A stretch of 64,000 nt of DNA, taken from positions 62,001 through 126,000 of the IMG/VR virus record IMGVR_UViG_3300032268_000986. One strand, 5' to 3'. Below, in pieces: positions 30,709 through 47,238 of this stretch (its first letter is position 1; each line of letters opens with the position of its first letter). The position numbers were made by a program, and so were the translations under genes. Under the pieces are notes generated by a model. It saw only the letters and a list, made by a program, of their open reading frames with translations. It was not told the origin of the DNA and made no database searches.

Positions 30709-30784
<76 letters not shown>

Positions 30785-30912: not shown

Positions 30913-30929
30913 GATAACTTTATAATAAA

Positions 30930-31132: not shown

Positions 31133-31138
31133 GGGATA

Positions 31139-31705: not shown

Positions 31706-32026
31706 GGTATTCTCTTTTCAAAGTAAAAATAACGATGTTGCAAAAGGTCAAGTAACAGACTGGACAACATGCAAACATCAAGTCACAACATGCAAAGCAC
31801 AGTGACCTGTATATGTCTGGCTAGCAAATCACAAATCCGATACAGTAATTCCAGAGCACACAAGTACGATCCGGTTGTTACACCGGAGGCCATAATTGTT
31901 CATTTTAGCATGAAGCTAAAACGTTTTTGTCTGTCCTCATCTACCTTTTGCTTCACCGGTTGACACAGTGTGTCAACAAACACAATTATAGCAAAACACT
32001 AGAGGTTAGTCTAGTGTTTTGGAGAT

Positions 32027-32497: not shown

Positions 32498-32523
32498 AAG
32501 TGCCCTGTAATATTTAGCTATTG

Positions 32524-32605
32524 TGGTACCCCAACCCGGACTTGAACCGGGACGCCGAAGCAGTAGATTTTGAGTCTACCGTGTCTACCATTCCACCATC
32601 GGGGC
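32524..32605 (-). tRNA. tRNA-Leu(CAA)
   Basis: GTAGA-CTCAAAA-TCTAC, variable arm. Confidence 0.93.
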
Positions 32606-32621
32606 ATGGGTCCAATATAAA

Positions 32622-33203
32622 TTATATTGGAATCCAGTGATTTAATCTATCTCTGGGATCAATACGGGCAGCTGGTACAATATCAAATGCTATGGTAATG
32701 CGAGGCTCAGGCAAGTGCCATGGCCAAGTACGATGGGAATCGCCTTGATTTTCACTCAACACCAATAGATTATTTTTTCCAACCACATCAAATTCTGTTT
32801 CATCAGGCAATCGATACGTGGTGTTGCTGGGCTCGGTGTCCACACAAAAAAATCCATGCCAACCACAATGCAATGAAAGATTGTGCCTGTGCCAATCTAT
32901 GTATTCATCTGTGTGACAGTAATTTAACCAAGCCTGACAATAGTATGCAGTGTTGTCGCAATGTTCTCTAAACATTGTTTTTAGTTCTAAATACAATTGA
33001 TGAAATTCTGGATAAGGGTACATAAAAATATTGTAATTCTTAAACAGTTGAGTTACTAACGAATTGGTTATCCTTGTCGTGCCAGGATCTTGTTTCTCAG
33101 GCCATGTATCAAGCACCAGTTGCCGCATCAACTCACAACTTGATTTTAGCTGTGCAAGATCTAGCTTCAGTTCTTTTGTTAGAATATAGTTGTGATGATT
33201 CAT
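32622..33203 (-). CDS. Putative 2OG-Fe(II) oxygenase
   Basis: QAWLN, WHRH, HRT, RITIAFD; start MNHH (track start lies in a tRNA). Confidence 0.65.
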   Translation of the reverse strand: MNHHNYILTKELKLDLAQLKSSCELMRQLVLDTWPEKQDPGTTRITNSLVTQLFKNYNIFMYPYPEFHQLYLELKTMFREHCDNTAYYCQAWLNYCHTDEYIDWHRHNLSLHCGWHGFFCVDTEPSNTTYRLPDETEFDVVGKNNLLVLSENQGDSHRTWPWHLPEPRITIAFDIVPAARIDPRDRLNHWIPI

Positions 33204-33223
33204 AAAATTAAACACTCTAAAAT

Positions 33224-33300
33224 TGGTCTCTGTAGCAGGATTCGAACCTGCGACCCCTTGCACCCCATGCAAGTGCGCTACCAGGCTGCGCCACACAGAG
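33224..33300 (-). tRNA. tRNA-Pro(GGG)
   Basis: CTTGC-ATGGGGT-GCAAG. Confidence 0.93.
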
Positions 33301-33328
33301 ATTTATTTTTACATACAAAAATAAAAAA

Positions 33329-33500
33329 TGCAAACAATCCGGTTTCGCCAGGGCCTCTGCAAGTCATCGACAATAGATAACTTTTCACACCGGAAACAGA
33401 GATAGACCTCTCATCTACCCAACTGGTCCATGTTAGATTAGTCGGATTACCAGTCCAAGAGCTAACTGGGGTATTACCCCCGCACGAGTCTTTGTTTGCA
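33329..33500 (-). ncRNA. Candidate stem-closed ncRNA
   Basis: Terminal 9-bp TGCAAACAA/TTGTTTGCA; internal hairpins. Confidence 0.4.
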
Positions 33501-33504
33501 AAAA

Positions 33505-33575
33505 TGGCGGGCCTGTACAGGAATCGAACCTGCCATCCGGCGCTTTGGACACGCCACGAATCTCCAGAGTGACCC
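33505..33575 (-). tRNA. Atypical tRNA-like gene, anticodon CCA (Trp), degenerate D arm
   Basis: T arm GCAGG-TTCGATT-CCTGT, anticodon arm GGCGT-GTCCAAA-GCGCC, 5-bp acceptor, CCA. Confidence 0.55.
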
Positions 33576-33580
33576 ATGAT

Positions 33581-33654
33581 TGGTGGACCGTGGGAGAGTC
33601 GAACTCCCGATGCTGCCATGCCATGGCAGAGTTATCCCATTTAACTAACAGCCC
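33581..33654 (-). tRNA. tRNA-Ala(GGC)
   Basis: G3:U70, CTGCC-ATGGCAT-GGCAG. Confidence 0.9.
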
Positions 33655-33658
33655 GTTG

Positions 33659-33742
33659 TGGTACGAGAGACGGGACTCGAACCCGTATGCCTTGCGACGG
33701 GAGATTTTAAGTCTCCTGAGTATACCATTTCTCCACTCTCGC
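33659..33742 (-). tRNA. tRNA-Leu(TAA)
   Basis: GGAGA-CTTAAAA-TCTCC, variable arm. Confidence 0.93.
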
Positions 33743-33746
33743 ATTT

Positions 33747-33822
33747 TGGTGCGTGATGACGGAGTCGAACCGCCGGCATCCAACGAGTCAAATTGGCACT
33801 CTACCAACTGAGTTAATCACGC
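33747..33822 (-). tRNA. tRNA-Val(GAC)
   Basis: CCAAT-TTGACTC-GTTGG (unusual U37). Confidence 0.85.
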
Positions 33823-33828
33823 AAGACT

Positions 33829-33905
33829 TGGTGCCCCAGAGGAGACTCGAACTCCTAAAATTTGGTTTCTAAGACCAACACGTATACCAATTCCGTCACC
33901 GGGGC
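33829..33905 (-). tRNA. tRNA-Leu(TAG), short variable loop
   Basis: TTGGT-CTTAGAA-ACCAA. Confidence 0.88.
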
Positions 33906-33919
33906 AAATTTCAATAACA

Positions 33920-33995
33920 TGGTACCACGAGCTGGACTCGAACCAGCCACACACAGATTTTCAGTCTGCTGCTCTACCTGATGAGCTACCGCGGC
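33920..33995 (-). tRNA. tRNA-Phe(GAA)
   Basis: GCAGA-CTGAAAA-TCTGT. Confidence 0.94.
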
Positions 33996-34000
33996 AAAAA

Positions 34001-34089
34001 TGGAGGAAGGCTAGTAGAATCGAACTCTATGCGCTTTCGCACACCTTCTGTTTTCAAGACAGAGTCAGGCCCAGCCTGATTAACCTTCC
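34001..34089 (-). tRNA. tRNA-Ser(TGA), atypical fold
   Basis: TCTGT-CTTGAAA-ACAGA, long variable arm, 5-bp D stem, U73. Confidence 0.75.
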
Positions 34090-34098
34090 ATTATTCAA

Positions 34099-34266
34099 TT
34101 ACTTTTTTTCTCGACGTGTGCTTTTTTGATGCACTTGTTCTTGAGCAACTTTCACATAACTGCGAATAAATGCACCACGTCTATGGTTATCCAAAATGGT
34201 GCAAGCCAGAGTTTTAACTGGTTTGCCAATCTTTACTGCACGTGAATCATAACCTCTGCAAGTCAT
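34099..34266 (-). CDS. 55-aa basic hypothetical protein
   Basis: SD aagga, MTCRGYDSRAVK... Confidence 0.65.
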   Translation of the reverse strand: MTCRGYDSRAVKIGKPVKTLACTILDNHRRGAFIRSYVKVAQEQVHQKSTRREKK

Positions 34267-34286
34267 ATTTGTTCCTTTAAATTTTT

Positions 34287-34363
34287 TGGTCGGAGTACAA
34301 GGATTCGAACCTTGGACCCCCTGGTCCCAAACCAGGTGCGCTACCAGACTGCGCCACACTCCG
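34287..34363 (-). tRNA. tRNA-Pro(TGG)
   Basis: CCTGG-TTTGGGA-CCAGG. Confidence 0.95.
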
Positions 34364-34369
34364 AAATAC

Positions 34370-34444
34370 TGGTACCTGGACACGGTTTCGAACCGCGGAC
34401 CCTCTCGGTGTAAACGAGATGCTCTACCCCTGAGCTATCCAGGC
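34370..34444 (-). tRNA. tRNA-Val(TAC)
   Basis: TCTCG-TTTACAC-CGAGA. Confidence 0.94.
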
Positions 34445-34449
34445 AATCA

Positions 34450-34523
34450 TGGAGCGGGATGGGGGAATCGAACCCCCGACTTTAGCTTGGAAGGCTAAGG
34501 TAATACCATTTTACGAATCCCGC
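34450..34523 (-). tRNA. tRNA-Gly(TCC)
   Basis: TTAGC-CTTCCAA-GCTAA. Confidence 0.94.
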
Positions 34524-34531
34524 ATGTTTGT

Positions 34532-34560
34532 ATTATACAGCCGACAATCGCAGTTGTCAA
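34532..34560 (-). promoter_or_regulatory. Consensus sigma70 promoter TTGACA-N17-TATAAT inside tRNA array
   Basis: Perfect hexamers and 17-nt spacer; the same at 35497-35525 and 47247-47275. Confidence 0.85.
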
Positions 34561-34567
34561 CATTATC

Positions 34568-34642
34568 TGGTGGATGTAAGTAGATTCGAACTACTGACCT
34601 GCCGCGTATGAAGCGGATGCACTACCGCTGTGCTATACATCC
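34568..34642 (-). tRNA. tRNA-Met(CAT), probably elongator
   Basis: CCGC-TTCATAC-GCGG, paired 1:72. Confidence 0.85.
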
Positions 34643-34647
34643 AAAAT

Positions 34648-34722
34648 TGGGGTGTCGTATGAGAATCGAACTCATGACAGCGGAATCACAACCCGCGGTT
34701 TTGCCACTAAACTAACGTCACC
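34648..34722 (-). tRNA. tRNA-His(GTG)
   Basis: GTG anticodon, G-1:C73. Confidence 0.92.
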
Positions 34723-34842
34723 ATATAGAAACACTTTCAATATCAGTTCCTTGCTGGCACAAAGAACCTTTCGCCTCTGCCAGGAGACCGAACATTGGCC
34801 GCGCTCATTGGCGGTTACTGTCCGTCAAAAATGTTTTTATAT
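34723..34842 (-). ncRNA. Candidate kissing-loop ncRNA
   Basis: Terminal AT-rich stem; two hairpin loops CTGGCA and TGCCAG are exact complements. Confidence 0.6.
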
Positions 34843-34915
34843 GGTAGGGGCACAGAGAATCGAACTCTGATTAATAGGTTAAAAGCCTACTACTTTGCCG
34901 TTAAGTTATACCCCC
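34842..34915 (-). tRNA. tRNA-Lys(TTT)
   Basis: TAGG-CTTTTAA-CCTA. Confidence 0.92.
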
Positions 34916-34918
34916 ATA

Positions 34919-34993
34919 TGGTCCCTCCGGTGAGATTTGAACTCACACTTCTCGGATTAAGAGTCCGGTATGCTACCGTAACATCTCAGAGGG
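34919..34993 (-). tRNA. tRNA-Lys(CTT), atypical body (A8/U14)
   Basis: CGGA-CTCTTAA-TCCG, CCA end. Confidence 0.8.
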
Positions 34994-35054
34994 ATGGATC
35001 GTAAAGAATTGTCTTTCACGTGCCATCCCTGACCATACGGGGTCAAGAATGACA

Positions 35055-35075
35055 CTAACGTTTGGCACGTTTCAT
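35055..35075 (-). CDS. Mini-ORF MKRAKR with strong SD
   Basis: AAGGAGA-acgac-ATG AAA CGT GCC AAA CGT TAG. Confidence 0.55.
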   Translation of the reverse strand: MKRAKR

Positions 35076-35098
35076 GTCGTTCTCCTTGTTTAAAAAAT

Positions 35099-35175
35099 TG
35101 GTGCCGCGTGAGAGATTCGAACTCCCCGCCCCTGCGTTCGTAGCACAGTGCTCTATCCAAATGAGCTAACGCGAC
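35099..35175 (-). tRNA. tRNA-Arg(ACG)
   Basis: CTGTG-CTACGAA-CGCAG. Confidence 0.93.
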
Positions 35176-35232
35176 CTAGAAAAGAATAGCCCAGGGACCT
35201 AACTCGTCAAAGGAGAGTATGGACTATGTTTG

Positions 35233-35307
35233 TGGTGCCCCGGGGGTGAATCGAACACCCGACCTCGGATTACAAAACCGATGTTTTACCACTAGAACTA
35301 ACGGGGC
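35233..35307 (-). tRNA. tRNA-Thr(TGT)
   Basis: TGT anticodon cloverleaf. Confidence 0.92.
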
Positions 35308-35314
35308 ATGTTGT

Positions 35315-35404
35315 TGGCGGTGCGACTGAGACTCGAACTCAGAAAGCGGCTTTCACCACTCGACGGATTAGCAATCCGCTCCAATACCATTATGGGACCG
35401 CACC
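35315..35404 (-). tRNA. tRNA-Ser(GCT)
   Basis: GCGGA-TTGCTAA-TCCGT, long variable arm, G73. Confidence 0.92.
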
Positions 35405-35412
35405 TCAAAAAT

Positions 35413-35488
35413 TGGCTCCCCAGGGTGGGATCGAACCACCGACACCTTGATTAACAGTCAAGTGCAACTACCGCTGTGCTACTAGGGA
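35413..35488 (-). tRNA. tRNA-Asn(GTT)
   Basis: CTTGA-CTGTTAA-TCAAG. Confidence 0.94.
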
Positions 35489-35533
35489 ATAATACAATTA
35501 TATAGTCAACAGGTGTTGCTGTCAACTAAAACT

Positions 35534-35608
35534 TGGTGCCGCCACATGGGATCGAACCATGGACCTACGCCTTATCAAGACGGTGCTCTACCACTGAGCT
35601 ATGGAGGC
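35534..35608 (-). tRNA. tRNA-Ile(GAT)
   Basis: CGTC-TTGATAA-GGCG. Confidence 0.9.
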
Positions 35609-35616
35609 ATAAAAAC

Positions 35617-35690
35617 TGGCACGGGAACTAGGGATCGAACCTAGGACGACAGAGTCAAAGTCTGTTGTGTTACCTCTACACCATTCCCGA
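35617..35690 (-). tRNA. tRNA-Gln(TTG)
   Basis: ACAGA-CTTTGAC-TCTGT. Confidence 0.92.
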
Positions 35691-35698
35691 ACAAAACT

Positions 35699-35773
35699 TG
35701 GTGGACCGTGGGAGAATCGAACTCCCGCCCGAGCCGTGCAAAAGCCCTGTGCTACCACTATCACTAACAGCCC
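35699..35773 (-). tRNA. tRNA-Ala(TGC)
   Basis: G3:U70, TGC anticodon. Confidence 0.92.
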
Positions 35774-35781
35774 AAAAAACT

Positions 35782-35855
35782 TGGCATCCCGCCAGGGACT
35801 CGAACCCCGACCAACGGTTTTGGAGACCGACATGCTGCCATTACACCAGCGAGAC
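35782..35855 (-). tRNA. tRNA-Trp(CCA)
   Basis: CGGT-CTCCAAA-ACCG, G73. Confidence 0.92.
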
Positions 35856-35869
35856 ACGTTAAATACTAC

Positions 35870-36484
35870 ATGAAAATCAATTTTACCACTGCATCACCTG
35901 CCATCTATTATCTTGACACTGTGGAACCCCCGCAACCTTGGCCCACCTTGTTACACGAATTGCAACAGTTATTATGGCAACAGGAACCAACCATTGGCGG
36001 TCAAGATCACTTTGCTGTGAGTTGCCTGGGCGCACATACCATACCATACCATTCTGCACCGCATAAATTTCAACAACACTTTGTTGCAGACACGTTCAAA
36101 CAACAAGTGCTAGATCAGCTGTTTGACAATGAAGAATTCATGATGCAGTGGGCCAACCCTGAACGCAAACATGTCAATGACATAACTGTGTTATGTGTGA
36201 ATTGGGTTGCAACCCCGCCAAGATATCGCAATCATCCTTGGCATGTTGACAGTCGCTGTCAAATGGCACATGGCATGATCTATATCACCGAGCAAGACAA
36301 TGTTTTACACAGCACTTGGTTCGATACTGGGCGTAACGGACATTTGTTGCGCATTCCGTCGGCACCGGGGCAAGGTTGGATGGTAGTAAACACTGACCAA
36401 GCCAGACACTGTGCTATGAACGACACTGACCGCACACGTTACAGTCTCAAATTCAGTCTTGAGCTAAAAGTGAGAAAATTTTAA
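35870..36484 (+). CDS. Putative 2OG-Fe(II) oxygenase, antisense to the tRNA array
   Basis: WHVD, GMIY, distal H, R.SL. Confidence 0.65.
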   Translation: MKINFTTASPAIYYLDTVEPPQPWPTLLHELQQLLWQQEPTIGGQDHFAVSCLGAHTIPYHSAPHKFQQHFVADTFKQQVLDQLFDNEEFMMQWANPERKHVNDITVLCVNWVATPPRYRNHPWHVDSRCQMAHGMIYITEQDNVLHSTWFDTGRNGHLLRIPSAPGQGWMVVNTDQARHCAMNDTDRTRYSLKFSLELKVRKF

Positions 36485-36687
36485 CACACTCTTTGGAATG
36501 TGTGTATTAAAACAGACTGTATGCTTAGGGAATAACATTTCTGTCAAGCGACCGGCAACGGGTACGCAATCTGTTTTAATACGCTCGGATTTTTTTATGT
36601 ACAAGAACATAAGCCATCCCCGAGGCCGCCCATTTGAAGCATGTTTAGAGTGCGCTTCGGGATCTCGTTTCCCATGTACACTAAATG

Positions 36688-36720
36688 AAAAACCCTGGAG
36701 TTTTTAGTTCCAGGGTCTTT
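36688..36720 (-). terminator. Intrinsic terminator (putative attenuator)
   Basis: ACCCTGGA/TCCAGGGT stem followed by U tract. Confidence 0.75.
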
Positions 36721-36748
36721 TGAATTTTTCTTGAGTCAGTTAATCTAG

Positions 36749-36883
36749 TTAACCATCCCAACCTTCAAAGGACCCCGACACTCCTGGAATACTATTCAAG
36801 CCCGCAAAACCGCGTGACCAGACAGACGCTGTCTGGAGCATTGTGGATTTTGTCAGCAGTGAATGATTCGTTGTGTTCATCAT
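36749..36883 (-). CDS. 44-aa putative leader peptide MMNTTNHSLLTKSTMLQTASVWSRGFAGLNSIPGVSGSFEGWDG
   Basis: Starts about 7 nt after TTGACA-N17-TACAAT (36891-36919); its 3' end is complementary to the terminator 5' arm. Confidence 0.65.
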   Translation of the reverse strand: MMNTTNHSLLTKSTMLQTASVWSRGFAGLNSIPGVSGSFEGWDG

Positions 36884-36936
36884 AAGTCCTATTGTATAGT
36901 ATTTAGCAATTGTTGTCAACCACTAAAGTGTTTTAT

Positions 36937-37119
36937 TTATCCATTTGTAGTCATTGTGTATGTTTCACTCATGTGAACCATGTACGCACGACTGGTGTTT
37001 GTTTCGTTATGGCTCTTGATAAAATCTCGAGCCAAGGCCTCACTATCAAAATACACAGTGCCACCAACAGTCATGTCGGTTTCTCTTTGTTCGTTGACAA
37101 TAACAACTTTGTATTTCAT
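36937..37119 (-). CDS. Hypothetical protein
   Basis: 60-aa ORF after tRNA. Confidence 0.5.
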   Translation of the reverse strand: MKYKVVIVNEQRETDMTVGGTVYFDSEALARDFIKSHNETNTSRAYMVHMSETYTMTTNG

Positions 37120-37126
37120 AGTTAAT

Positions 37127-37202
37127 TGGTTGCGGGACTTGGATTCGAACCAAGGATGGCAAAGGCTTATGAGACCTCGCTAGTGACCAGACCTTCCCCG
37201 CG
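37127..37202 (-). tRNA. Initiator-like tRNA-fMet(CAT), atypical
   Basis: CGCGGGG...CCCGCAACCA with C1:A72 mismatch; weak D arm. Confidence 0.75.
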
Positions 37203-37227
37203 CTATTCAGTTACAGTTATTTATACA

Positions 37228-37305
37228 TGGAGTCTCGGGAGGGATTTGAACCCACGAATCAACGGATTTGCAATCCGAGCCATTGAGCCACTCTGGTACC
37301 GAGAC
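37228..37305 (-). tRNA. tRNA-Cys(GCA)
   Basis: CGGA-TTGCAAA-TCCG, U73. Confidence 0.92.
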
Positions 37306-37312
37306 ATTACCC

Positions 37313-37390
37313 TATATGTAAACACACTGTCATCACCACCATACTTCCACGTCTTACGGCAGATGTGTCTGTCCTGTGTGTTTACATATA
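37313..37390 (-). ncRNA. Candidate stem-closed small RNA
   Basis: Perfect 15-bp terminal inverted repeat TATATGTAAACACAC. Confidence 0.45.
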
Positions 37391-37401
37391 AGCATGTTGA
37401 A

Positions 37402-37623
37402 TTTGAGAGCCTACGCCGCTTTTATCGTAGATTTATTCAGGACTTACCGGCCGCCTAGCCTGACCTCGAGCACGATGGATATCACTTGGGCTTCGTCCAG
37501 CGTAGTCTCCTTTACAGACCTCCGCAGTTGCCCGCGGGTGGGAGTTGAACCCATTTGCCTTTTACTGCTTTGGTCCTTCGAAGAAACCTAGACAGCGTGA
37601 CTTCACTTGCTGACACTCTCAAA
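37402..37623 (-). ncRNA. Candidate structured ncRNA (~220 nt)
   Basis: TTTGAGAG/CTCTCAAA ends; T-loop-like TGGG-TTCAACT-CCCA; several hairpins. Confidence 0.55.
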
Positions 37624-37626
37624 ACT

Positions 37627-37702
37627 TGGCGGTCCTAGGGGGTAACGATCCCCACTCTTACGGCGTGACAAGCCGTCGTGCGTCCATGAACACTTTAGGA
37701 CC
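37627..37702 (-). tRNA. tRNA-Asp(GTC), atypical T loop
   Basis: ACGGC-TTGTCAC-GCCGT; T loop ATCGTTA. Confidence 0.85.
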
Positions 37703-37705
37703 AAT

Positions 37706-37856
37706 TTTTATAGTCAAGCACCGAGAATGCCAATTTAGGAGTCCGGTGCTTCCGTTCCAAAGCCGATGCAGTTATGTCAGGATCCGTTCCCGGCCGGTTG
37801 GACCCGAATAGTGTATGCGTCCATACACGATACCTTATCGATGCTTGACTATAAAA
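37706..37856 (-). ncRNA. Candidate stem-closed ncRNA (~150 nt)
   Basis: Perfect 15-bp terminal stem TTTTATAGTCAAGCA. Confidence 0.5.
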
Positions 37857-37860
37857 ACAA

Positions 37861-38062
37861 AAATGCTCTGCATCCCCCGGCGGTAATTGTAGTGCATCAT
37901 CTCTTGGATTTCTCCGCAATTCTCACACACCTTCCACCCGCTTCCCGACAGGGACCGTTATCGCATTGCCAGCGGCCTTTCGGTAAGAAGACTACCACCC
38001 TTGGCTATCACACCACTTCTCATCTTGCGGGTCACAATATCTGCTGATTAGGCAGAACGTTT
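37861..38062 (-). ncRNA. Candidate structured ncRNA (~200 nt)
   Basis: Terminal stem; long-range ACCCGC/GCGGGT pairing; GNRA-like loops. Confidence 0.55.
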
Positions 38063-38148
38063 TGGTGGAGACGGATGGATTCGAACCACCGCGCTTTTTA
38101 GGGGCCAGATTTACAGTCTGGTGCAATCAACCACTCTGCCACATCTCC
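38063..38148 (-). tRNA. tRNA-Tyr(GTA)
   Basis: CCAGA-CTGTAAA-TCTGG, variable arm. Confidence 0.94.
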
Positions 38149-38221
38149 AAAAAAGGTAGGATCACGGTTGCAGGACCTAGTGCTCTTGCGAGGAAGTATC
38201 CAGGCGATGTGATCCTAAAAA

Positions 38222-38297
38222 TGGTACACGATACGGGAATCGAACCCGTCTTACCAACGTGAAAGGCTGGTGTCCTAAACCGATAGACGAATCGTGC
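38222..38297 (-). tRNA. tRNA-Glu(TTC)
   Basis: CCAGC-CTTTCAC-GTTGG. Confidence 0.93.
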
Positions 38298-38300
38298 ATG

Positions 38301-38532
38301 CTATATGCAACCACATTAGGGAAGTTCTTGACACGCATCACCAACTTGCATCAAGACCTCATTACGGGCCTAGTAGTTCCGCCGCCTTCCTGGAGTTTGG
38401 TGTAGCCCTATCCCTCACGCTCGATGGTGTCTCGCGCTACTCTTAGGCCCTCCTGCTTCATGGGTATCCGGCTCGAATCAGCCTTTTGTTCACCCCTAAC
38501 GGACTAGGTAACCCTAATGTGTTTGCATATAG
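38301..38532 (-). ncRNA. Candidate stem-closed ncRNA (~230 nt)
   Basis: 20/21-bp terminal inverted repeat. Confidence 0.55.
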
Positions 38533-38572
38533 TAGCTGGGCAAACCCAGCACCATATGAAAATAACTGTAAC

Positions 38573-38584
38573 TTGTTAAAGAAC
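38573..38584 (-). promoter_or_regulatory. rrn-type boxA (Nus antitermination) site
   Basis: GTTCTTTAACAA, one mismatch to GCTCTTTAACAA, just downstream of TTGACC-N17-TATACT (38626-54). Confidence 0.65.
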
Positions 38585-38762
38585 TCTGGAACTAGTTGTG
38601 ATCAACTATTTCCTAACTAGCCACTAGTATAACATCATCTGCCATACCGGTCAACTTGTTTTGTAAAAGCCCCGCCTTGTTGCAGGGTCTTTACAAACTC
38701 AGCTGTCTTTCCCGACTTGTTTCTATTGTAACACTCTACTCAATTTTGGTCTAGCACTAAAA

Positions 38763-38790
38763 GAAAAACCCGCATCATGTGCGGGTCTTT
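38763..38790 (-). terminator. Intrinsic terminator (putative attenuator)
   Basis: ACCCGCA-CATGA-TGCGGGT then TTTTCTTTT. Confidence 0.8.
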
Positions 38791-38817
38791 GGTTGTTAGT
38801 ACTTTCTACTTAGGGTG

Positions 38818-38916
38818 TTACACCCGCTGTAACACCTGTACCGTTGACGATGGCTCGCAATCGCTCTCATAGGCTATTGCTGTCCAATAATTCAAGGTGA
38901 TTAGTTGTGTCATCAT
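38818..38916 (-). CDS. 32-aa putative leader peptide MMTQLITLNYWTAIAYESDCEPSSTVQVLQRV
   Basis: ATG about 7 nt after TAGACA-N17-TATAAT (38923-51); terminator follows. Confidence 0.62.
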   Translation of the reverse strand: MMTQLITLNYWTAIAYESDCEPSSTVQVLQRV

Positions 38917-38980
38917 AGTGTTATTATATATGCCTGTGCAATAAATGTCTATACTTTTCTGGGTCTTTTTGTCCATTTTG

Positions 38981-40057
38981 TCAGAGATCCAACAACACAT
39001 GATGCTCGCTCACGCTGCCGATGTAGTCACACCGAACTTGGCTCTGGTTGAACCAACCAGGGTGCTGGTGTTGCAATAGGTCACAGTAGGCTTCAAACTT
39101 TGCCAATGTGGTTTGACCCTGGGAACTCAGCGCACAGTTATTGATCAACAGCAGTTCCTTGCGGTCAAATTGCCAGTCATGTTGATGTGACACTGTGCCA
39201 TTGATTCTTGGAAACCCCCACTTTTTATCCAGGCAGTTTCCTGGTGTGGGGAACCCCAAGGCAGCTTTGATGTCAAGCCCCTGCACTCCCTGTTGCGCAA
39301 GATCATGTAGGCCGTATGCATACGCAAACGCTAGGTTAGGGTTGCGTTGGTCACAGAAAAAGTGAATCATGCGAGGAGTCATGAAATTCAAATTGAACCG
39401 GTTGTCCATCCAGTAAAATTTGTTGCCATCTAACACTGGCATGGCAGCACCACCAACATTGACATAATTATCTTGTTGTAGATGTGGATAACACTCAATG
39501 GCCTGCAACGGGTTAGTGGTGCATGGGCGCAGTGTTTTGTGTCGCAACCACCGATGTTCTACATCTTCCATGTACCAAGCATAGTGCTCGGGCAAGATAT
39601 CATAGTACACCACTTGAGCTCGACTGCGGTATTGTTGCAGAGTCTTGGCCAGCACGGACCTAAAGGGAAACACATCAATTTCTATATTGACATACTCATC
39701 CACAGCACCAGGGAATCTACGATACACTGCAATTTCATCAACATCTGCCCCAGTTTCTAAAAATGCCATCAGGGCAGCATGACTGTCCATGCCACCGCTG
39801 TACCACAGGCGTATGCGACTGTGATGATCACGTATGAGTTGGGCCTGATCCAAGCACAGTTGCCAAAAAGTTTTTTGCGGTCGTAATCCGGCTAGGCTGT
39901 GGGACCAAACACGAAACCCCGGTGCGGCATGCCCCAGTTCTTGAGCTTTTCTCAGCGCATCAATCTTGCTGTGTCCATGCCATGTGCTCACATGGTAATG
40001 AGGTCCTGTGTAGCCCTGCCCTGGATCAATCTTTTCTGTGACTTTTACTGGTGTCAT
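38981..40057 (-). CDS. PP-loop (adenine nucleotide alpha-hydrolase-like) protein
   Basis: RLWYSGGMDS. Confidence 0.6.
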   Translation of the reverse strand: MTPVKVTEKIDPGQGYTGPHYHVSTWHGHSKIDALRKAQELGHAAPGFRVWSHSLAGLRPQKTFWQLCLDQAQLIRDHHSRIRLWYSGGMDSHAALMAFLETGADVDEIAVYRRFPGAVDEYVNIEIDVFPFRSVLAKTLQQYRSRAQVVYYDILPEHYAWYMEDVEHRWLRHKTLRPCTTNPLQAIECYPHLQQDNYVNVGGAAMPVLDGNKFYWMDNRFNLNFMTPRMIHFFCDQRNPNLAFAYAYGLHDLAQQGVQGLDIKAALGFPTPGNCLDKKWGFPRINGTVSHQHDWQFDRKELLLINNCALSSQGQTTLAKFEAYCDLLQHQHPGWFNQSQVRCDYIGSVSEHHVLLDL

Positions 40058-41355
40058 GAGTATAGTTGAATCAATCGATTCGTTATGCCATTGAGTTGAT
40101 TTTCTAACAGCAGCACCAGCACCAAGGGCATGAAATCCACTCGACGAGCTGTAATCCAGCCCACTGCACCACTGGCTGCAAACACCAGCATGTAGTACAG
40201 AGTCTGATCGCTACGCCAGCCCTGATACATCACAGTGGCAGTCAACAGCACAATCAACACTGATACTATGGCATTGTAGTACTGTTGGAACCAGCTCAGT
40301 AATTGTTTTACCACTGACGAGCACACCCAGGCCACAACAGCACATCCGATCAGTAAACTTGCAGTTACCAGGCCCACCATGTTCCAGTCAAGATTGGTGG
40401 CACGCCACCCATGACTGGCCAAGATATCCAATATCACCAACTCACTGGGCTGTACCGCTAGGCCCAACAACACAAACGGAATCAGGCTTGAAACCTGGCT
40501 GGCATTGTTGGCAGCTTCTGCAGCCGTGAGACGAGACAGACTGTCTGTGAGATGCGGTTGTTTGCGAAATCTTGATTCCACAGAGTGTGCCAAATTGGAT
40601 GTGATGATACCGCCCACGTATGGCACAAGCCCACACACAAATCCCACTGCACTGCCGCGCAGTGCAGATAGCCAGGCAAACGATCTTTGCGTGTGACCAT
40701 TGATGTCAATGGGCATGCCCATGGGGGATTGCTGGTGCTTGATCAACAGCATGGTGGGCACTGCATACACTCCCAGTATCACCGGGGTAATTGGTATGCC
40801 TCCGGCCAAGTACACATTGCCCAGAGTCAAAAAGTCCTGACCAGTCTGCATGTTGTGTCCTACTGCGCCTATAATCCAGCCCAGTGCAATCAACCCAAGA
40901 TTTATCATGGCTCTGTTGCCGGGCCATGCAGTGACAAATGTCAGTGTGACAAACAACAACACTGCCATGACTTCGGTTCTAAACAGCATGGGCCAGGCCT
41001 GTCCTTGGTGCAAGCAAATCAACATTGCGGAGAGACTCGCTGCCATGCCAATCAAGCTGGCTCGGGCAGTGTCTTTCAATGCTTGCTGGATAGCATTGTG
41101 ACCAATAATGATATTGCGTTCACGCAAGGCAGGTGCAGATGTTACTTCACCTAGAGTGCCAAAGCACAGCGCAGCCACTGATCCTGAAAAGTCTCGAGCC
41201 GAAATCATCACAGCGTAAAATGCAATCAACACAGCCGGACTCATCATGTTCAGCATGGGATACAGTATCAACAACATAAACACCGGACCCAGACCAGGCA
41301 TGAGCCCTACCAAGATTCCAATGGCTGGTGCCAACAGCAACAACAGCAGTTCCAT
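40054..41355 (-). CDS. Tripartite tricarboxylate transporter TctA-like permease
   Basis: GILVGLMPGLG, GFVCGLVPYVG, AAEAANNA; polytopic membrane protein. Confidence 0.82.
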   Translation of the reverse strand: MELLLLLLAPAIGILVGLMPGLGPVFMLLILYPMLNMMSPAVLIAFYAVMISARDFSGSVAALCFGTLGEVTSAPALRERNIIIGHNAIQQALKDTARASLIGMAASLSAMLICLHQGQAWPMLFRTEVMAVLLFVTLTFVTAWPGNRAMINLGLIALGWIIGAVGHNMQTGQDFLTLGNVYLAGGIPITPVILGVYAVPTMLLIKHQQSPMGMPIDINGHTQRSFAWLSALRGSAVGFVCGLVPYVGGIITSNLAHSVESRFRKQPHLTDSLSRLTAAEAANNASQVSSLIPFVLLGLAVQPSELVILDILASHGWRATNLDWNMVGLVTASLLIGCAVVAWVCSSVVKQLLSWFQQYYNAIVSVLIVLLTATVMYQGWRSDQTLYYMLVFAASGAVGWITARRVDFMPLVLVLLLENQLNGITNRLIQLYS

Positions 41356-42209
41356 TATTGTGTTACTTCGCTATAACTTTTTAGCAGTTGAAGTTGACCC
41401 GCAGGTGTCAACGGAGGCATTGGGTTGAAATTTCGCTGTTGGTACTGAGCATAACTGACCAAGTTTTTTTGCACGTCTAAAATATCTTGGCGCAGCCGAT
41501 TCAGGGTAGCGGCGTCAAAATTCTTGGCCCTGAGATAGGTCACTGCTGCAAAGTCACGGTATTCAAAGTGCGGAAGAGCATCCTGCACAGCCGGGATGTT
41601 CAAGATTGAGTATGTGCTGGAGTTGTACAAACACTGTGCTTGTGATTGACTTTGCCATTTGGCCCCAATGCTACTGAACACAAAATCAACCTCGTTGGCA
41701 GCAAATGCCAGCTCGATTTCTTTGCTGTTGTTGTATTTGATCACGCGGTGGCGAGTGCCTAGATGCTGATTCAGTGCCAGGATATAGCGTTCGTCAAATG
41801 GCAACACAATGGTGCCAATGGTATAGCTGGCACCTCGACGTTCAAAGTCTTGTCTGGTAATGTTTTTTGTAGTGCAAGTGAACCTTGGCACCAGGTACAC
41901 CACGGTCAGTAATTCTGCAGCACTGGGCGGTGGCAAATACGCCGGGTCACGCTCACTTTCGGCCAAGTCGTTGCCCCATGCCAACAAAAATGGTCGGGTA
42001 GCTGAATTAAAAGTGGCCTTGCTCAGTCTAGGATTGTGAGTCACACGAATGTCAAAGGCCCAGCCGCGTGTGGCAAGTTCGGTAGTGAGCATTCTTGTCA
42101 GGGCCTGAGCATTGCCGGTCTGACTGTAAGGGATATGCACCACAATGGGATCAGCCCAGGCAGCAAAGCTGATCATGGCTGCCAGCACAAAAGAAACGAT
42201 GGATTTCAT
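41355..42209 (-). CDS. Periplasmic substrate-binding protein (TctC/Bug-like)
   Basis: Signal peptide, IPYSQTG, IKY...A.AANEVDF; adjacent to TctA. Confidence 0.6.
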   Translation of the reverse strand: MKSIVSFVLAAMISFAAWADPIVVHIPYSQTGNAQALTRMLTTELATRGWAFDIRVTHNPRLSKATFNSATRPFLLAWGNDLAESERDPAYLPPPSAAELLTVVYLVPRFTCTTKNITRQDFERRGASYTIGTIVLPFDERYILALNQHLGTRHRVIKYNNSKEIELAFAANEVDFVFSSIGAKWQSQSQAQCLYNSSTYSILNIPAVQDALPHFEYRDFAAVTYLRAKNFDAATLNRLRQDILDVQKNLVSYAQYQQRNFNPMPPLTPAGQLQLLKSYSEVTQ

Positions 42210-42446
42210 GTTATTCCTTGAGGTAGTAAATCTAGCTCTGGGAAACCCATCACGGTCGGCGTTCTGAGTGTATCACATCAGTAAAGGAGTTGCACTACTC
42301 CAGGCGTCAATTTGATCCGACGTCAGCACCTGCTGGCGTTGCTGGACTTACTTAGTGTTTGATTTTACGCTTGACCAAAAAAAATGTCAAGAAAACTGGG
42401 CCAAAAAAAACAGGGCTCTGAGCCCTGTTTTTGAACACAGTGTGAA

Positions 42447-42998
42447 TTAGAAACGCACACTGATGCCTAGGCCGTATGACCGTTCTCTAATGGTTTCCAT
42501 TGAACGTCCAACAGTGGCAGTCAGGGATACTTTGTTAGCAATTGGATATGCGTATTGTGCAAACACCACTGTTTGCTTGGTTTCTTTGGCTGCTGTGGTA
42601 AGAGCTCGAGTGTTGATCCCGGTCAGTGCGTAACCTGGACCAATCGCTGTTCCGGCATTGATGCCCACTTTACCGTAATTGTATGGGTTGCCGGCCCCAT
42701 TTCGAGTGTTGTCGTATCCAATGCCCACATAAGGAGTGATGGTTACACCGTTGGTTGAAAGATTTTTTCCAACTGTGCCTTCGAGACCATTGAGCAGACC
42801 GCCGTTGTCGTAACGAGCGGTACGTGACTGAACTCCGTATTGAACCCCGTCAATTTCTTTGCCAAATCTAACAAACTGTGCTGTGCTATTGGCCCCAGTT
42901 TTGAGATCAGTCACACGTTCAACAGTGACCGAAGCAAAGTCTGCGGCAAACACGCTGGTGGACAATGCCAACATCAGCATTACAAAAATTTTCTTCAT
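42447..42998 (-). CDS. Small outer-membrane beta-barrel protein
   Basis: Signal peptide, amphipathic strands, C-terminal YGLGISVRF. Confidence 0.75.
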   Translation of the reverse strand: MKKIFVMLMLALSTSVFAADFASVTVERVTDLKTGANSTAQFVRFGKEIDGVQYGVQSRTARYDNGGLLNGLEGTVGKNLSTNGVTITPYVGIGYDNTRNGAGNPYNYGKVGINAGTAIGPGYALTGINTRALTTAAKETKQTVVFAQYAYPIANKVSLTATVGRSMETIRERSYGLGISVRF

Positions 42999-43070
42999 TG
43001 TTTTTCCTTATAAAAGTAAGGGCTTTTGACCCTGAGCAATTATATATGCAACTGCATGTTGCAGTCAAGA

Positions 43071-43097
43071 AGAAAGGTCAGATTAACTGACCTTTCT
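43071..43097 (-). terminator. Hairpin at the end of the tmRNA coding piece
   Basis: AGAAAGGTCAG/CTGACCTTTCT. Confidence 0.6.
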
Positions 43098-43500
43098 GGT
43101 GGTTTCTGTTACGAGGTATTTCCTACCCTAAGCAGTGTTTAGGCTGCTAATGCGAACTGTGAGTCGTTTGCGTTTACTTTTTTGCTTGATTAACGGTCAT
43201 CGCCTACCGTGCTGTCCACTCTGTTACTTGTTGCCCTGTCGAAACTATGCAGGCCCATCATAAAGAAACTTCTTCAAATCTAGATGCCAAAAGCACAATA
43301 CGCAAACCGGCATCTGTTTGAATTACTACTCCATTACCCATGGTATAGACAATATCATAGTCTTTGCCAATTGTTAGTTCCTTATGCACAGCTTTAACAT
43401 CAGGTAATGATTTAAGTATCATAAACTTCCTTATGGTGGACCTGGGGGGATTCGCACCCCCGTCCAGAACACTGTTCTCATCACTTCATACAGCAATAAC
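43098..43500 (-). ncRNA. ssrA: Circularly permuted (two-piece) tmRNA, tag ANDSQFALAA
   Basis: Acceptor piece ending CAGGTCCACCA (43434) precedes 5' piece GGGCCTG...TTTCGAC (starts 43256); G3:U70; tag frame 43139-43171; outer ends approximate. Confidence 0.92.
43258..43422 (-). CDS. 54-aa ORF inside the tmRNA intervening segment
   Basis: SD AAGGA; MILKSLPDVKAVHKELTIGKDYDIVYTMGNGVVIQTDAGLRIVLLASRFEEVSL. Confidence 0.6.
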   Translation of the reverse strand: MILKSLPDVKAVHKELTIGKDYDIVYTMGNGVVIQTDAGLRIVLLASRFEEVSL

Positions 43501-43502
43501 TT

Positions 43503-43661
43503 TTAGATCTGCACCACGGTCCATTTGGTTGTAAATGGTTTGCCTTCGGCCTTGTGTTTCAGTATCTTCGCAAACTCTTTTTCACGGAGTTTGGCAATGG
43601 TTTCTGTATCGTGGTCGAAGCAAGCCTTGTACAAACGAGAAACCAATTTCTTTTGTTTCAT
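43503..43661 (-). CDS. 52-aa basic hypothetical protein
   Basis: SD aaggagg; [14 protein letters not shown]... Confidence 0.6.
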
Positions 43662-43895
43662 AGCTTACCCCTCCTTGACAATTATTTATGCAAATTATAC
43701 AGCATTGTCTGTTGGTTTGTCAACCGCCAATTTGGTCACAATGTCATACACTTGAGAGTACACGTTGGTGATTTTGTCCAGTTGTTCGTCACTGACTTGT
43801 GTTTCAAAATACACTAGATCTCGTGCTAGATTTTCTTGTAGCTGTTTGAGTTGATTTTGGTCATGCATGGCAGTATCCTGTTGGGATACTGTTAT

Positions 43896-44486
43896 TTAGT
43901 AACTGACCGATTGCCGGTCTGCCAGAGAAAATTCACCGTTTCTCACAAACGCAGTCAAGATCTGTTTGGTGCCAGCAGTGACCACTTCGCCTTGATGCAC
44001 CAAGGGATTGGCAACGTCATAATAATACACCAGAGCACTGCCACGCTTGGGCTGAATTCTTAAATTCAGCTTGGGAAAATAAGTGCAACCACCCTCAAAA
44101 TCATCATTGAGGTACATGATCATGCTGGCAATTCTTTGAGTCTGGAACCCACCAGTCAAGTCACTGTGGCAATTGAAGTAGTCGCCACTGCTGTACTTTA
44201 TCATGGGCAGTGGTTCAACATGACTCAGGGGCACCTTGAAAAAATTGGCCACTCGTTGAGCAACGGAATCAAAGTATTCATCACGGCCATATTCAATCCG
44301 GTGAGTCATGCACTGCCTGACAGGTCTAAGTTCCAACTCACCTGACCCAAGGCGAACCCGCCCGGGTACCAGGTCAAGCTCTTTGCTCAGGATCAGTTCA
44401 AGCTCGGTTGGACTCAACCAGTTATCATACTGTGCAATCCATGGCTGCTGACTGTACACCTTGGACGCCAACACATCAGGTGTCAT
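43896..44486 (-). CDS. Prolyl 4-hydroxylase-like 2OG-Fe(II) oxygenase
   Basis: HSD, MYLNDDFEGGCTYF, HQGEVV..G.K. Confidence 0.88.
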   Translation of the reverse strand: MTPDVLASKVYSQQPWIAQYDNWLSPTELELILSKELDLVPGRVRLGSGELELRPVRQCMTHRIEYGRDEYFDSVAQRVANFFKVPLSHVEPLPMIKYSSGDYFNCHSDLTGGFQTQRIASMIMYLNDDFEGGCTYFPKLNLRIQPKRGSALVYYYDVANPLVHQGEVVTAGTKQILTAFVRNGEFSLADRQSVSY

Positions 44487-45039
44487 CACTGTCAACCACC
44501 AACCAACCCAGCTGAAACAGATCCTGACGTACCTCGTCAGTGACCAGGCCCTCGCCCACATAGGCCTGGCATTCAAGATAATATTCTTTTTGGTCTTCGG
44601 TCAACTCAGCAAATTCTTGATCACTCAGCGGGCCTCCGCGTATGCCCGAACAGTACCATTCAATGTAGTCGCCCTTTTCCAGCATGTCAGCAACAATGCC
44701 TCCGGCATAGCGCCAGCTGCAACTCCAGGTCTGACTCTTTAACAGGGGCATGACCTCGTTGCGTTGAAAATCATTGTTGCACATGGCAGCATAGAGATTT
44801 TGAGCATACACATGACTGCTACGTGTCTTGGCCAAGATCCAGTCAGTGGTTCTCAAGTCCCACTCAAGGTTGTTTTTCTGCCACTCGGGATCTTGTTCCT
44901 GGGCCAGTCGGTCAAAGTCCATATCTTCAATCATTTTGATATAGTCCTGGTTGAGTTCTTGGTTGGTTTCGTCGCACCTTTCAACATACTTATCTCGTTG
45001 AAAGGTGTTACGCTCGGGGCTTCTTGAAAGTTTCAACAT
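44476..45039 (-). CDS. Hypothetical phage protein
   Basis: YAQNLYAAMCNN, WSCSWR motifs. Confidence 0.7.
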   Translation of the reverse strand: MLKLSRSPERNTFQRDKYVERCDETNQELNQDYIKMIEDMDFDRLAQEQDPEWQKNNLEWDLRTTDWILAKTRSSHVYAQNLYAAMCNNDFQRNEVMPLLKSQTWSCSWRYAGGIVADMLEKGDYIEWYCSGIRGGPLSDQEFAELTEDQKEYYLECQAYVGEGLVTDEVRQDLFQLGWLVVDSDDT

Positions 45040-45343
45040 CTTCCACAGCTTTCTTTAGAGTTTCTGCATAGTTGATGGCCTGTTGCTGAGTCATGATCAT
45101 GCTGGCTTCGTATTCAACATAGCCACGAGTCAGCAAGATCCACATGGTCTGCCAGCGATTCATACTCCACCATTTGCTTTTTTGTTGGGTGTATGTGGTC
45201 ACAGTGATGTTGTGATCCTCGGCTTCGATCCAGACATTATGATCGTGATTGCTATCCCCACACTCGCATACCACTTGATAGGCCATGGCGTCGCCCCAGT
45301 CGTTGCGTTTTAGTATGCCCTGTGCTGGCAGTTCCGGAGTCAT
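45008..45343 (-). CDS. Hypothetical protein
   Basis: Coupled ORF. Confidence 0.65.
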   Translation of the reverse strand: MTPELPAQGILKRNDWGDAMAYQVVCECGDSNHDHNVWIEAEDHNITVTTYTQQKSKWWSMNRWQTMWILLTRGYVEYEASMIMTQQQAINYAETLKKAVEDVETFKKPRA

Positions 45344-45576
45344 TGCAGTCGATCCCCACGGCCTGCACTGCGCATCAAGGCCTCTACCACAGCTTCGTCA
45401 CCACGAGCAATCAGCTGGTCGATGTCCACAGGACTACTCTGAGCCTCAAGTTCTTCAGGAGTCAGGTTGGCAAACATGTCAGTGATCTCTTTCATGAGAT
45501 CATCAAGCTCTTGTTGTGTGCCTTCAAAGTCGTCAAATGCCCCCGGGGCAAATTCAATGCGCAGTGGCTTGGTCAT
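45340..45576 (-). CDS. Hypothetical acidic protein
   Basis: SD aagga, coupled ORF. Confidence 0.65.
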   Translation of the reverse strand: MTKPLRIEFAPGAFDDFEGTQQELDDLMKEITDMFANLTPEELEAQSSPVDIDQLIARGDEAVVEALMRSAGRGDRLQ

Positions 45577-46478
45577 TGTGATTCCTTGGTTGATACGAGT
45601 GGAGAAATGTGAGACATAATTCTATTGAAAATTGGATCCAGATTTTCTTGTTCAACGACTGTACTTGATTTTATACAAACACAATTAAACTTGTCAATGT
45701 TATCTAGTTTTAGAAATTCTTCAATGGTGTAGTAGTCAGGATGCCCTTGCCACCAGCAGCTGGTGGTGTCATCATAAAGGCTTAACCGATGTTGAAATTG
45801 AAATCCAGCGTTGGGATTTTTTTGTAAACCTAGGTTGCCCAGCAGTTCATATTCGCTGAACCAAAATGGGGGAGAATTGTCGGGATTGACATCAGCAGAA
45901 AACACCTGTTCCATGGCCAGTAACCAGTTACATCCGTATGTTTGTTCCATGTGGGTTTTCAGCGCCACCCAGTCTTTCTTTAGCACAGGCATAAACTCTG
46001 TGACAAAACAATGACTGGTTTGCCGTTCCTGGCCTGTGAACTTTTTTACGTATTGATAATACCCTTGACTCTGAGTGGTGTTTTCTATCACGTAATATCT
46101 TGGGGTTGACCCATCAAAATACTGATAAGGTATTAACGAAAATGTATCGCAATCTTGAATCAACACACGATCGCTGTTGACTTGATCCAGTGCTAGTAAT
46201 TTAAAAAATTGCTGAGCTATCCATCCTGAGAATTGATAATAGTCAAACTCTGGAAGCAACTGTTGTCTCATCAGCTGCTGGTCAAAAATAACAGTCATGT
46301 TTGAAGTATCAATGCCATGATCTCGATAAATCTGTAATACATCAACGGGTTCGCGATCATGGCCCAGGCCAAAACAAACGTATGTGTGATCAGGTTGAGG
46401 GTCAAGAAAGTGATCAAACTTCAGGGTAAGTATTGAATCTGCAATTCTTGAACTTGCAACAAAAAATAATCTTATCAT
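45573..46478 (-). CDS. Putative GT-A-fold glycosyltransferase-like protein
   Basis: GWIAQQFFKL, DCD (DxD), FSEYELLGN. Confidence 0.6.
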   Translation of the reverse strand: MIRLFFVASSRIADSILTLKFDHFLDPQPDHTYVCFGLGHDREPVDVLQIYRDHGIDTSNMTVIFDQQLMRQQLLPEFDYYQFSGWIAQQFFKLLALDQVNSDRVLIQDCDTFSLIPYQYFDGSTPRYYVIENTTQSQGYYQYVKKFTGQERQTSHCFVTEFMPVLKKDWVALKTHMEQTYGCNWLLAMEQVFSADVNPDNSPPFWFSEYELLGNLGLQKNPNAGFQFQHRLSLYDDTTSCWWQGHPDYYTIEEFLKLDNIDKFNCVCIKSSTVVEQENLDPIFNRIMSHISPLVSTKESQ

Positions 46479-46500
46479 TTTGTATTTTTATGACATTGTG

Positions 46501-47076
46501 TCATGATCCTTGTGCGTCTGATCCATTATACAATGAAAAGGGATTTGTTGTCAACAGTTCTTGATTGATTTTGATGTTGTGCTGTATTCTTTCCAGCTGT
46601 TGAGTATTTAATTTTTTGTTGTGTATTTCTTGATACAGCTGATGTACAAATTCCACAGACCATAAATCACTGTAGTTTATGGTGCGATCAAATCTGCAAC
46701 GCTGATATTCAGTTTGTAAATTTTTTGTCAGCCAGTATCTACCGTAAATGGTTCGCCAAGTCAGCTCGTCATGGTCCGGACGTTTGTTGAAATTGAGCCA
46801 GGCCACGTCCCAAGATTCTTGATCAGTATTGACCCATATGCACCAGGAATACCACTGGCGCAGGCTGGCCGGGGAAACAGGTATTTTTTTATACTGAGAT
46901 GGGCCAAAACCATGAATTTTGTCACAGTGGCGGTGATGCGCCGACGGGTTAAATTCGTCATCAATTGAGTGTAGATGCCAGGTGGTTTCGAGTACATCGC
47001 CATAGAGTACGCTGCTTAGAAAATCGCCTCGAGCACCGGGCGCAAACACAAACAAGGGCACACGATTATTTTTCAT
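46501..47076 (-). CDS. Hypothetical protein
   Basis: PGARGDFL N-terminal loop. Confidence 0.6.
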   Translation of the reverse strand: MKNNRVPLFVFAPGARGDFLSSVLYGDVLETTWHLHSIDDEFNPSAHHRHCDKIHGFGPSQYKKIPVSPASLRQWYSWCIWVNTDQESWDVAWLNFNKRPDHDELTWRTIYGRYWLTKNLQTEYQRCRFDRTINYSDLWSVEFVHQLYQEIHNKKLNTQQLERIQHNIKINQELLTTNPFSLYNGSDAQGS

Positions 47077-47084
47077 GACATAAC

Positions 47085-47159
47085 TGGCCCGGCGTGAGGG
47101 AATCGAACCCCCATAATGACTTTAGAAGAATCATGTCCTATCCATTGAACGAACGCCAG
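47085..47159 (-). tRNA. tRNA-Arg(TCT)
   Basis: TGATT-CTTCTAA-AGTCA. Confidence 0.9.
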
Positions 47160-47163
47160 ATTC

Positions 47164-47238
47164 TGGTGGGCCCACTAGGAATTGAACCTAGACTCAATCG
47201 ATTATGAGTCGACTGCTTTACCATTAAGCTATAAGCCC
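47164..47238 (-). tRNA. tRNA-Ile2(CAT)
   Basis: GGGCTTA acceptor, TCGA-CTCATAA-TCGA, Ile2-like body. Confidence 0.8.

Follow-up and report, generated by a model that had tools for sequence, protein, structure and literature searches.

Permuted (two-piece) tmRNA genes are known from Alphaproteobacteria, Betaproteobacteria and cyanobacteria (Keiler et al. 2000 and Sharkady & Williams 2004, as cited in PMC9004378; database paper PMC11915505). In these genes an acceptor piece with an encoded CCA comes first, then an intervening segment (IVS), then the coding piece. The IVS is removed by tRNA-processing enzymes and the pieces are not religated. The 2025 tmRNA database, covering 11,946 permuted sequences and 79 phage sequences, reports one tRNA-Ala gene and one repetitive element within IVSs, and no protein genes (PMC11915505). 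Neither a paper on phage two-piece tmRNAs (PMC9004378) nor one on the distribution of tmRNA and SmpB (PMC4131195) mentions an open reading frame in the IVS, and further full-text searches found no prior description of one.

Protein genes nested within excised segments of other stable RNAs have been described. Intervening sequences in the 23S rRNA of Coxiella and Leptospira carry an ORF (S23p) within a stem-closed segment that is excised without religation, leaving the mature RNA in pieces (PMC4990558). That is one ORF family at a fixed rRNA helix, and the ORF in Coxiella is thought not to be made in vivo. Homing endonuclease genes occur in group I introns in the T-loops of tmRNAs (PMC11915505), where the protein gene is also removed at the RNA level, but by splicing and at a different position.

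I describe here a phage permuted tmRNA gene whose IVS, lying between CCA and G1 (the first nucleotide of the coding piece), is filled by a 54-codon protein gene. In related phages about 20 unrelated ORF families are found at the same spot, most often with a Shine-Dalgarno (SD) site at a fixed distance. There is no intron and no splicing, and what is new relative to the systems above is the presence of protein genes in tmRNA IVSs, the diversity of the cargo, and the reuse of the processing stem as translation signals.

A permuted tmRNA gene with an open reading frame in its IVS

The sequence analyzed (the window) is 64,000 nucleotides, positions 62,001 to 126,000 of IMG/VR record IMGVR_UViG_3300032268_000986, a virus genome of 342,865 bp judged 99% complete by CheckV. 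It carries 33 tRNA genes that cover most amino acids and are interspersed with small ORFs. One further tRNA-like sequence is called tRNA-Sec by Rfam (48 bits, gathering score 47) but is not called by ARAGORN. It has a 9-bp acceptor stem and a 6-bp D stem, but its anticodon loop reads CU-UGA-AA, so that the anticodon is UGA (serine codon UCA), not UCA. It may be an unusual, allo-tRNA-like tRNA-Ser. A search of the tmRNA locus by blastn against cultured-phage records found no match.

Within the tRNA region, ARAGORN calls a permuted tmRNA with the tag ANDSQFALAA, and the Rfam model tmRNA_permuted (RF04321) scores 135.9 bits over its full length (1-213) against a gathering score of 47. The acceptor is of the tRNA-Ala type: GGGCCUG pairs with CAGGUCC, including G3:U70, followed by the discriminator A and CCA. 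The tag reading frame begins with an Ala resume codon and ends in ALAA and a stop. In the Rfam search of the window, clan competition kept RF01849 at 58.8 bits. The genome has no SmpB gene, so the tmRNA must use the host's.

The positions of these elements are given in Table 1. The original prediction, that the 177-nt IVS is almost entirely a 54-codon ORF preceded by AAGGA and stopping one base before G1, is correct in all its coordinates and features. The SD lies 5 nt before the AUG. An ORF this long from a start in the first 30 nt appears in 2% of shuffles of this IVS. ORFs on the plus strand that overlap the IVS are mechanical only.

Table 1. Positions of features in the window and in contigs carrying related genes (contigs are numbered with L; positions without a contig name refer to the window)
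Feature	Position	Strand	Remarks
tRNA gene cluster	29040-47238	-	33 tRNA genes
tRNA-Sec call by Rfam	34005-34089	-	anticodon UGA
183-aa protein gene	42447-42998	-	directly downstream of the tmRNA
Permuted tmRNA, ARAGORN	43048..43526	-	tag ANDSQFALAA
Permuted tmRNA, RF04321	43139..43495	-	135.9 bits
tmRNA coding piece	43071..43256	-	G1 is 43256
3' hairpin with U-rich tail	43071..43097	-	looks like an intrinsic terminator
Tag reading frame	43139..43171	-	ANDSQFALAA*
Intervening segment (IVS)	43257..43433	-	177 nt, presumably absent from mature tmRNA
Cargo gene	43258..43422	-	54 codons plus UGA
UGA stop codon	43260..43258	-	leaves only U43257 before G1
3' strand of terminal stem	43260..43271	-	IVS positions -4 to -15; overlaps the last codons and the stop codon
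5' strand of terminal stem	43423..43434	-	A76 plus IVS positions +1 to +11
SD AAGGA	43432..43428	-	within the 5' strand of the stem
tmRNA acceptor piece	43434..43495	-	T-arm, CAGGUCC, discriminator A; CCA ends at 43434
52-aa ORF	43503..43661	-	ends 8 nt before the acceptor piece; probably co-transcribed
Promoter-like site	43694..43723	-	TTGACA-18-TATAAT, 12 of 12; pattern match only
57-aa free-standing gene	43695..43868	-	helical protein
2OG-Fe(II) oxygenase gene	43896-44576	-	Pfam E = 4e-11; just upstream of the tmRNA operon
Bax1-I-like gene	about 56871-57530
IVS cargo of L037	L037:2268-2726	-	152-aa HNH homing endonuclease; ends ..VSL on the conserved UGA before G1
Tandem cargo of L117	L117:110-340	-	36-aa peptide as in L069 and 35-aa peptide as in L055
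Cargo ORFs reading across G1	L014:3559-3684, L031:7953-8051, L024:5262-5363		membrane peptides
Free-standing family members near tRNA genes	L249:675-987, L251:2501-3306		tRNA-Asn; two tRNA-Ser genes and a NADAR gene

A conserved stem closes the IVS

The ends of the IVS pair, as predicted originally, but the pairing is longer than the 9 bp first supposed: A76 and the first 11 nucleotides of the IVS pair with positions -4 to -15, giving 12 bp that include G:U pairs. C75:G-3 and A73:U-1 also pair, so the acceptor stem continues into a helix of about 22 bp with one mismatch, which RNAfold predicts.

To see whether this stem is particular to the window, I extracted the IVS from 114 permuted tmRNA loci: the window, contigs L001 and L002 (see below), and the usable loci among the 120 that share the T-arm pattern in IMG/VR. 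IVS length in this sample runs from 20 to 531 nt. In the 90 unique IVSs the register +k : -(k+4) is 94% paired for k = 1-10, while registers shifted by one or two positions are only 49-61% paired. Several pair types occur at most positions; at k = 5, for example, there are CG 27, GC 26, UA 12, UG 8, AU 7, and GU 6. The stem is therefore a conserved feature of the precursor in this whole tmRNA clade, whether or not an ORF is present. It is ancestral and was not built to regulate the ORF; rather, the SD was carved out of the stem. In ORF-less IVSs the 5' strand reads AAGnA, while in ORF-bearing ones it reads AAGGA, with the partner strand changed to match.

It might be supposed that the conservation of the IVS reflects an RNA structure or processing element and that the open frame is coincidental. 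The ends of the IVS are indeed under clear RNA-level constraint, and the folding z-score of the precursor is modest (-2.15). However, the interior of the IVS is entirely different in relatives with the same tmRNA, and the pattern of substitutions described in the next section contradicts this idea, which I consider very improbable.

The ORF is a protein-coding gene

A word-indexed search of 5.8 billion proteins found three other clusters. Two of these, P0002 (89% identity) and P0003 (73-74%), lie in contigs L001 and L002, respectively, both inside the IVS of closely related permuted tmRNAs, with tags ANDEQFALAA and ANDEQYALAA. L002 scores 123 bits and L001 scores 81 bits with the beta-proteobacterial type model RF01850 (gathering score 84). 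The third, P0004 (60-64%), lies in four contigs, L003-L006, that have no tmRNA by ARAGORN (L003-L006) or by Rfam at E < 0.1 (L003, L005, and L006). There the gene is free-standing with its own SD, ahead of Bax1-I, WYL, and OmpA-domain genes. A Bax1-I-like gene in the window is 48-60% identical (tblastx segments) to the gene that follows the free-standing homologue in L003.

Among the three IVS-resident copies, dN/dS is 0.28, 0.21, and 0.29, with an excess of differences at third codon positions (13/5/20 by codon position for the window against L002; Fisher p = 7e-5). Against the free-standing copy synonymous sites are saturated, while the protein stays 60-64% identical. The homologues and the pattern of substitution by codon position settle that the ORF is coding.

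An exhaustive profile search found 52 representative clusters at E < 1e-3 (9 at E < 1e-10), nearly all of 50-62 aa, with the consensus MxLxSLPDxK..LTxGKxY..GNGxVI..ILxSRF. All those whose contexts were fetched (L248, L249, L250, L251/L252, and L288-L290) are free-standing, with no tmRNA. Some lie next to tRNA genes, which hints at an association with tRNA regions. L288 is 78% identical to the IVS ORF of L002, closer than is the window's own copy. A protein-pattern scan of viral contigs found nothing beyond the window's own record, and a metagenome scan with the same alignment gave 4 loci, all free-standing. The family is accessory: the genome has this one copy, and two other large phage genomes that were examined have none.

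AlphaFold2, run on the family alignment, predicts a small beta-barrel with a mean pLDDT of 90. Confidence drops in the last block of residues, which holds the final four, EVSL. These four and the stop are dictated by the stem and by the UGAU motif before G1, and the four residues are missing from P0003 and P0004. The predicted barrel may be SH3-like, but Foldseek hits to SH3 domains reach only E = 0.3-0.9 and TM about 0.5, and the better matches (TM 0.7-0.76) are to unnamed proteins of about 60 aa. Pfam, PHROGs, and PDB sequences give nothing, and the ESM Atlas places the protein among phage hypothetical proteins of about 55 aa; these searches give no function, only a small and perhaps SH3-like phage protein. 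The protein has no match to the S23p family. Nor does it resemble a type I toxin with fold-back inhibition: the 5'-3' pairing over the SD is present, but the product is predicted to be a soluble beta protein and not a short hydrophobic membrane peptide.

An alternative view is that the ORF is a silent passenger, recently recombined into a spacer where it is not translated because the SD is locked in the stem, and that it will decay. In favor of this idea, the SD is predicted to be paired in both the precursor and the excised IVS, so translation could be very weak, the family is accessory, and the Coxiella ORF offers a precedent (PMC4990558). But it is difficult to reconcile with three IVS-resident copies that have diverged to 73-89% protein identity under purifying selection with no disruption of frame, all keeping the SD and start codon, nor with the near absence, in the clade as a whole, of SD-like sequences except where an ORF follows. 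I regard it as unlikely, although there is no expression evidence for this ORF: lake metatranscriptome contigs lie at high depth on the mature parts (43104-43271 and 43420-43503) with nothing in the interior (43273-43398), but these come from relatives with other IVSs (one joint carries a 39-nt IVS of the type found in locus L034), and contigs cannot prove absence. Summed word depths reach the thousands on the mature pieces of this tmRNA clade, the coding piece running about ten times deeper than the acceptor piece, and phage-type two-piece tmRNAs seem abundant in lake RNA.

Unrelated genes occupy the same site in related phages

The case is not isolated. An SD-like motif in the first 12 nt occurs in 1 of 40 unique IVSs shorter than 84 nt and in 28 of 50 IVSs of 84 nt or more. 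Of those 28, 25 have an ORF from a start within the first 30 nt after CCA (about 11 nt in most) that fills 75-97% of the IVS, compared to 2 of the 22 long IVSs without the motif (p = 8e-9). The loci are related to each other, so these are not independent events. The cargo peptides fall into 20 clusters with no BLASTP similarity between them. They include hydrophobic peptides of 23-45 aa, a 52-aa helical protein, proteins of 50, 56, 61, 101, 123, and 151 aa, an 86-87-aa protein matching Pfam CxxCxxCC (29.4 bits against a gathering score of 23), and, in the 531-nt IVS of L037, an HNH homing endonuclease (PHROG 655, E = 2.6e-15). Other cargo pairs are also under purifying selection, with dN/dS of 0.06 for L017/L043 and 0.08 for L069/L117.

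Some cargoes, including the window's, end on the UGA of the conserved UGAU before G1, and several of these share the ending ..VSL. Others stop earlier. A few (L014, L031, L024, and L057) run past G1 and stop only inside the mature coding piece. L117 holds two cassettes in tandem, the second preceded by its own copy of the stem-5' motif (TAAGGAG..ATG), as if cassettes were joined at that motif.

The genes that flank the tmRNA allow these IVSs to be compared in a common context. Downstream in the window is a gene for a 183-aa protein whose N-terminus looks like a signal peptide and whose C-terminus ends ..VRF, reminiscent of an outer-membrane beta-barrel as judged by eye. It has no Pfam hit but is conserved directly downstream of the tmRNA in at least 12 related loci (40-47% identity). 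The upstream gene encodes a 187-aa protein. Both recur next to the tmRNA in many loci, whose IVSs are short and ORF-less (L108, L065, L028, L107, L105, L077, L094, L102) or hold different cargo (L029, L057, L069, L019, L101, L052, L117, L122, L043). The mature tmRNA flanks are almost identical to the window's around unrelated cargo: 98%/98% for L043, 94%/96% for L048 and L114, and 94%/100% for the ORF-less L028.

The window's 57-aa free-standing gene is homologous (51% identity) to the IVS cargo of L029, L054, and L064, and its homologue sits upstream of the tmRNA in L027/L072, L069/L118, and L114/L124. The 123-aa cargo of L114 has a free-standing homologue elsewhere in the window's genome. 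A 70%-identical homologue of the 52-aa ORF directly upstream of the tmRNA lies in the same position in L040.

As a bacterial comparison, the T-arm pattern was a poor control, since it returned almost only standard one-piece tmRNAs from bacterial genomes. A search with RF01850 of 151 Burkholderiales genomes gave only three permuted genes, with IVSs of 25, 43, and 30 nt. A short ORF-less IVS is therefore the likely ancestral state, with ORFs inserted later.

Both parts of the original interpretation that can be tested by comparison, that the ORF is a cargo gene and that the IVS is a permissive insertion site, thus hold. Might the contents of the IVS instead be a self-mobile element, such as a homing-endonuclease cassette or an intron-like element, of which the 54-codon ORF is part? 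The HNH gene in L037 and the tandem cassettes in L117 lend some support, but the window's ORF has no HNH, LAGLIDADG, or GIY-YIG hit, Rfam found no intron family in the window, and the IVS holds nothing beyond the ORF and the stem. This seems improbable for the window.

A model for expression and exchange of the cargo

I propose, with fair confidence, that the ORF is a genuine accessory gene of the phage, encoding a protein of about 50 residues with a predicted small beta-barrel fold, that has been captured into the loop of the conserved stem closing the IVS. The remainder of the model is inferred. One transcript, from the promoter-like site to the terminator-like hairpin (both consensus matches only), would carry the 52-aa ORF, the acceptor piece, the cargo ORF, and the coding piece. 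In a thermodynamic model the SD is unpaired with a probability of 0.01 in the full precursor and 0.06 in the excised IVS, but about 0.5 in nascent RNA that lacks the 3' strand of the stem, about 165 nt downstream. The simplest reading is that ribosomes load mainly during the interval before the stem closes, after which initiation stops, RNase P cuts at G1, and 3' processing trims at CCA, releasing the two tmRNA pieces and discarding the IVS. Cargoes whose stop lies beyond G1 can terminate only on uncut precursor, which fits translation before processing. The coupling of translation to tmRNA maturation suggested by the original prediction is plausible but remains an inference. Cargo may be exchanged between co-infecting phages by recombination in the highly conserved mature tmRNA flanks, helped in some lineages by a resident homing endonuclease.

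One might argue that it is the act of translating the IVS that matters and not the product. A ribosome running through the last codons would melt the 3' strand of the stem and the acceptor extension, timing or gating RNase P and 3' processing, so that the ORF would act like a leader peptide in regulating tmRNA maturation. Unrelated ORFs do share one geometry, with the SD in the stem, the start about 11 nt after CCA, and the stop in or near the UGAU before G1, many are only 23-41 codons, and some run past G1. Against this, the window's ORF and several others show purifying selection at the protein level, there are (predicted) folded domains and free-standing homologues that cannot serve such a role, and many syntenic relatives manage without any ORF. 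I think this explanation unlikely.

A more speculative extension, which I offer only tentatively, is that phage two-piece tmRNA genes are a dedicated gene-cassette platform, in which the processing stem supplies the ribosome-binding site and, through the UGAU before G1, the stop codon, and in which translation is gated by folding and cleavage of the tmRNA precursor. RNase P cleavage would leave the stop codon one base from the 3' end, or remove it altogether in cargoes that read past G1. The cargo message could then become a non-stop substrate of the very tmRNA it is born with, which would tie the amount of cargo protein to trans-translation activity.

Implications

The IVSs of tmRNA genes have been treated as short, disposable spacers. 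Here they hold translatable genes, in one window and in about twenty unrelated families across related freshwater phages. One transcript would serve both as the precursor of a stable RNA and as an mRNA, with its ribosome-binding site and stop codon made from the RNA-processing stem. The locus offers a compact natural system for studying competition between translation and RNA maturation. The finding also flags a class of small phage proteins, many of them membrane peptides, that annotation pipelines will either miss or mark as conflicting with the tmRNA call. Finally, it suggests that conserved RNA genes can serve as portable recombination arms for the exchange of accessory genes.
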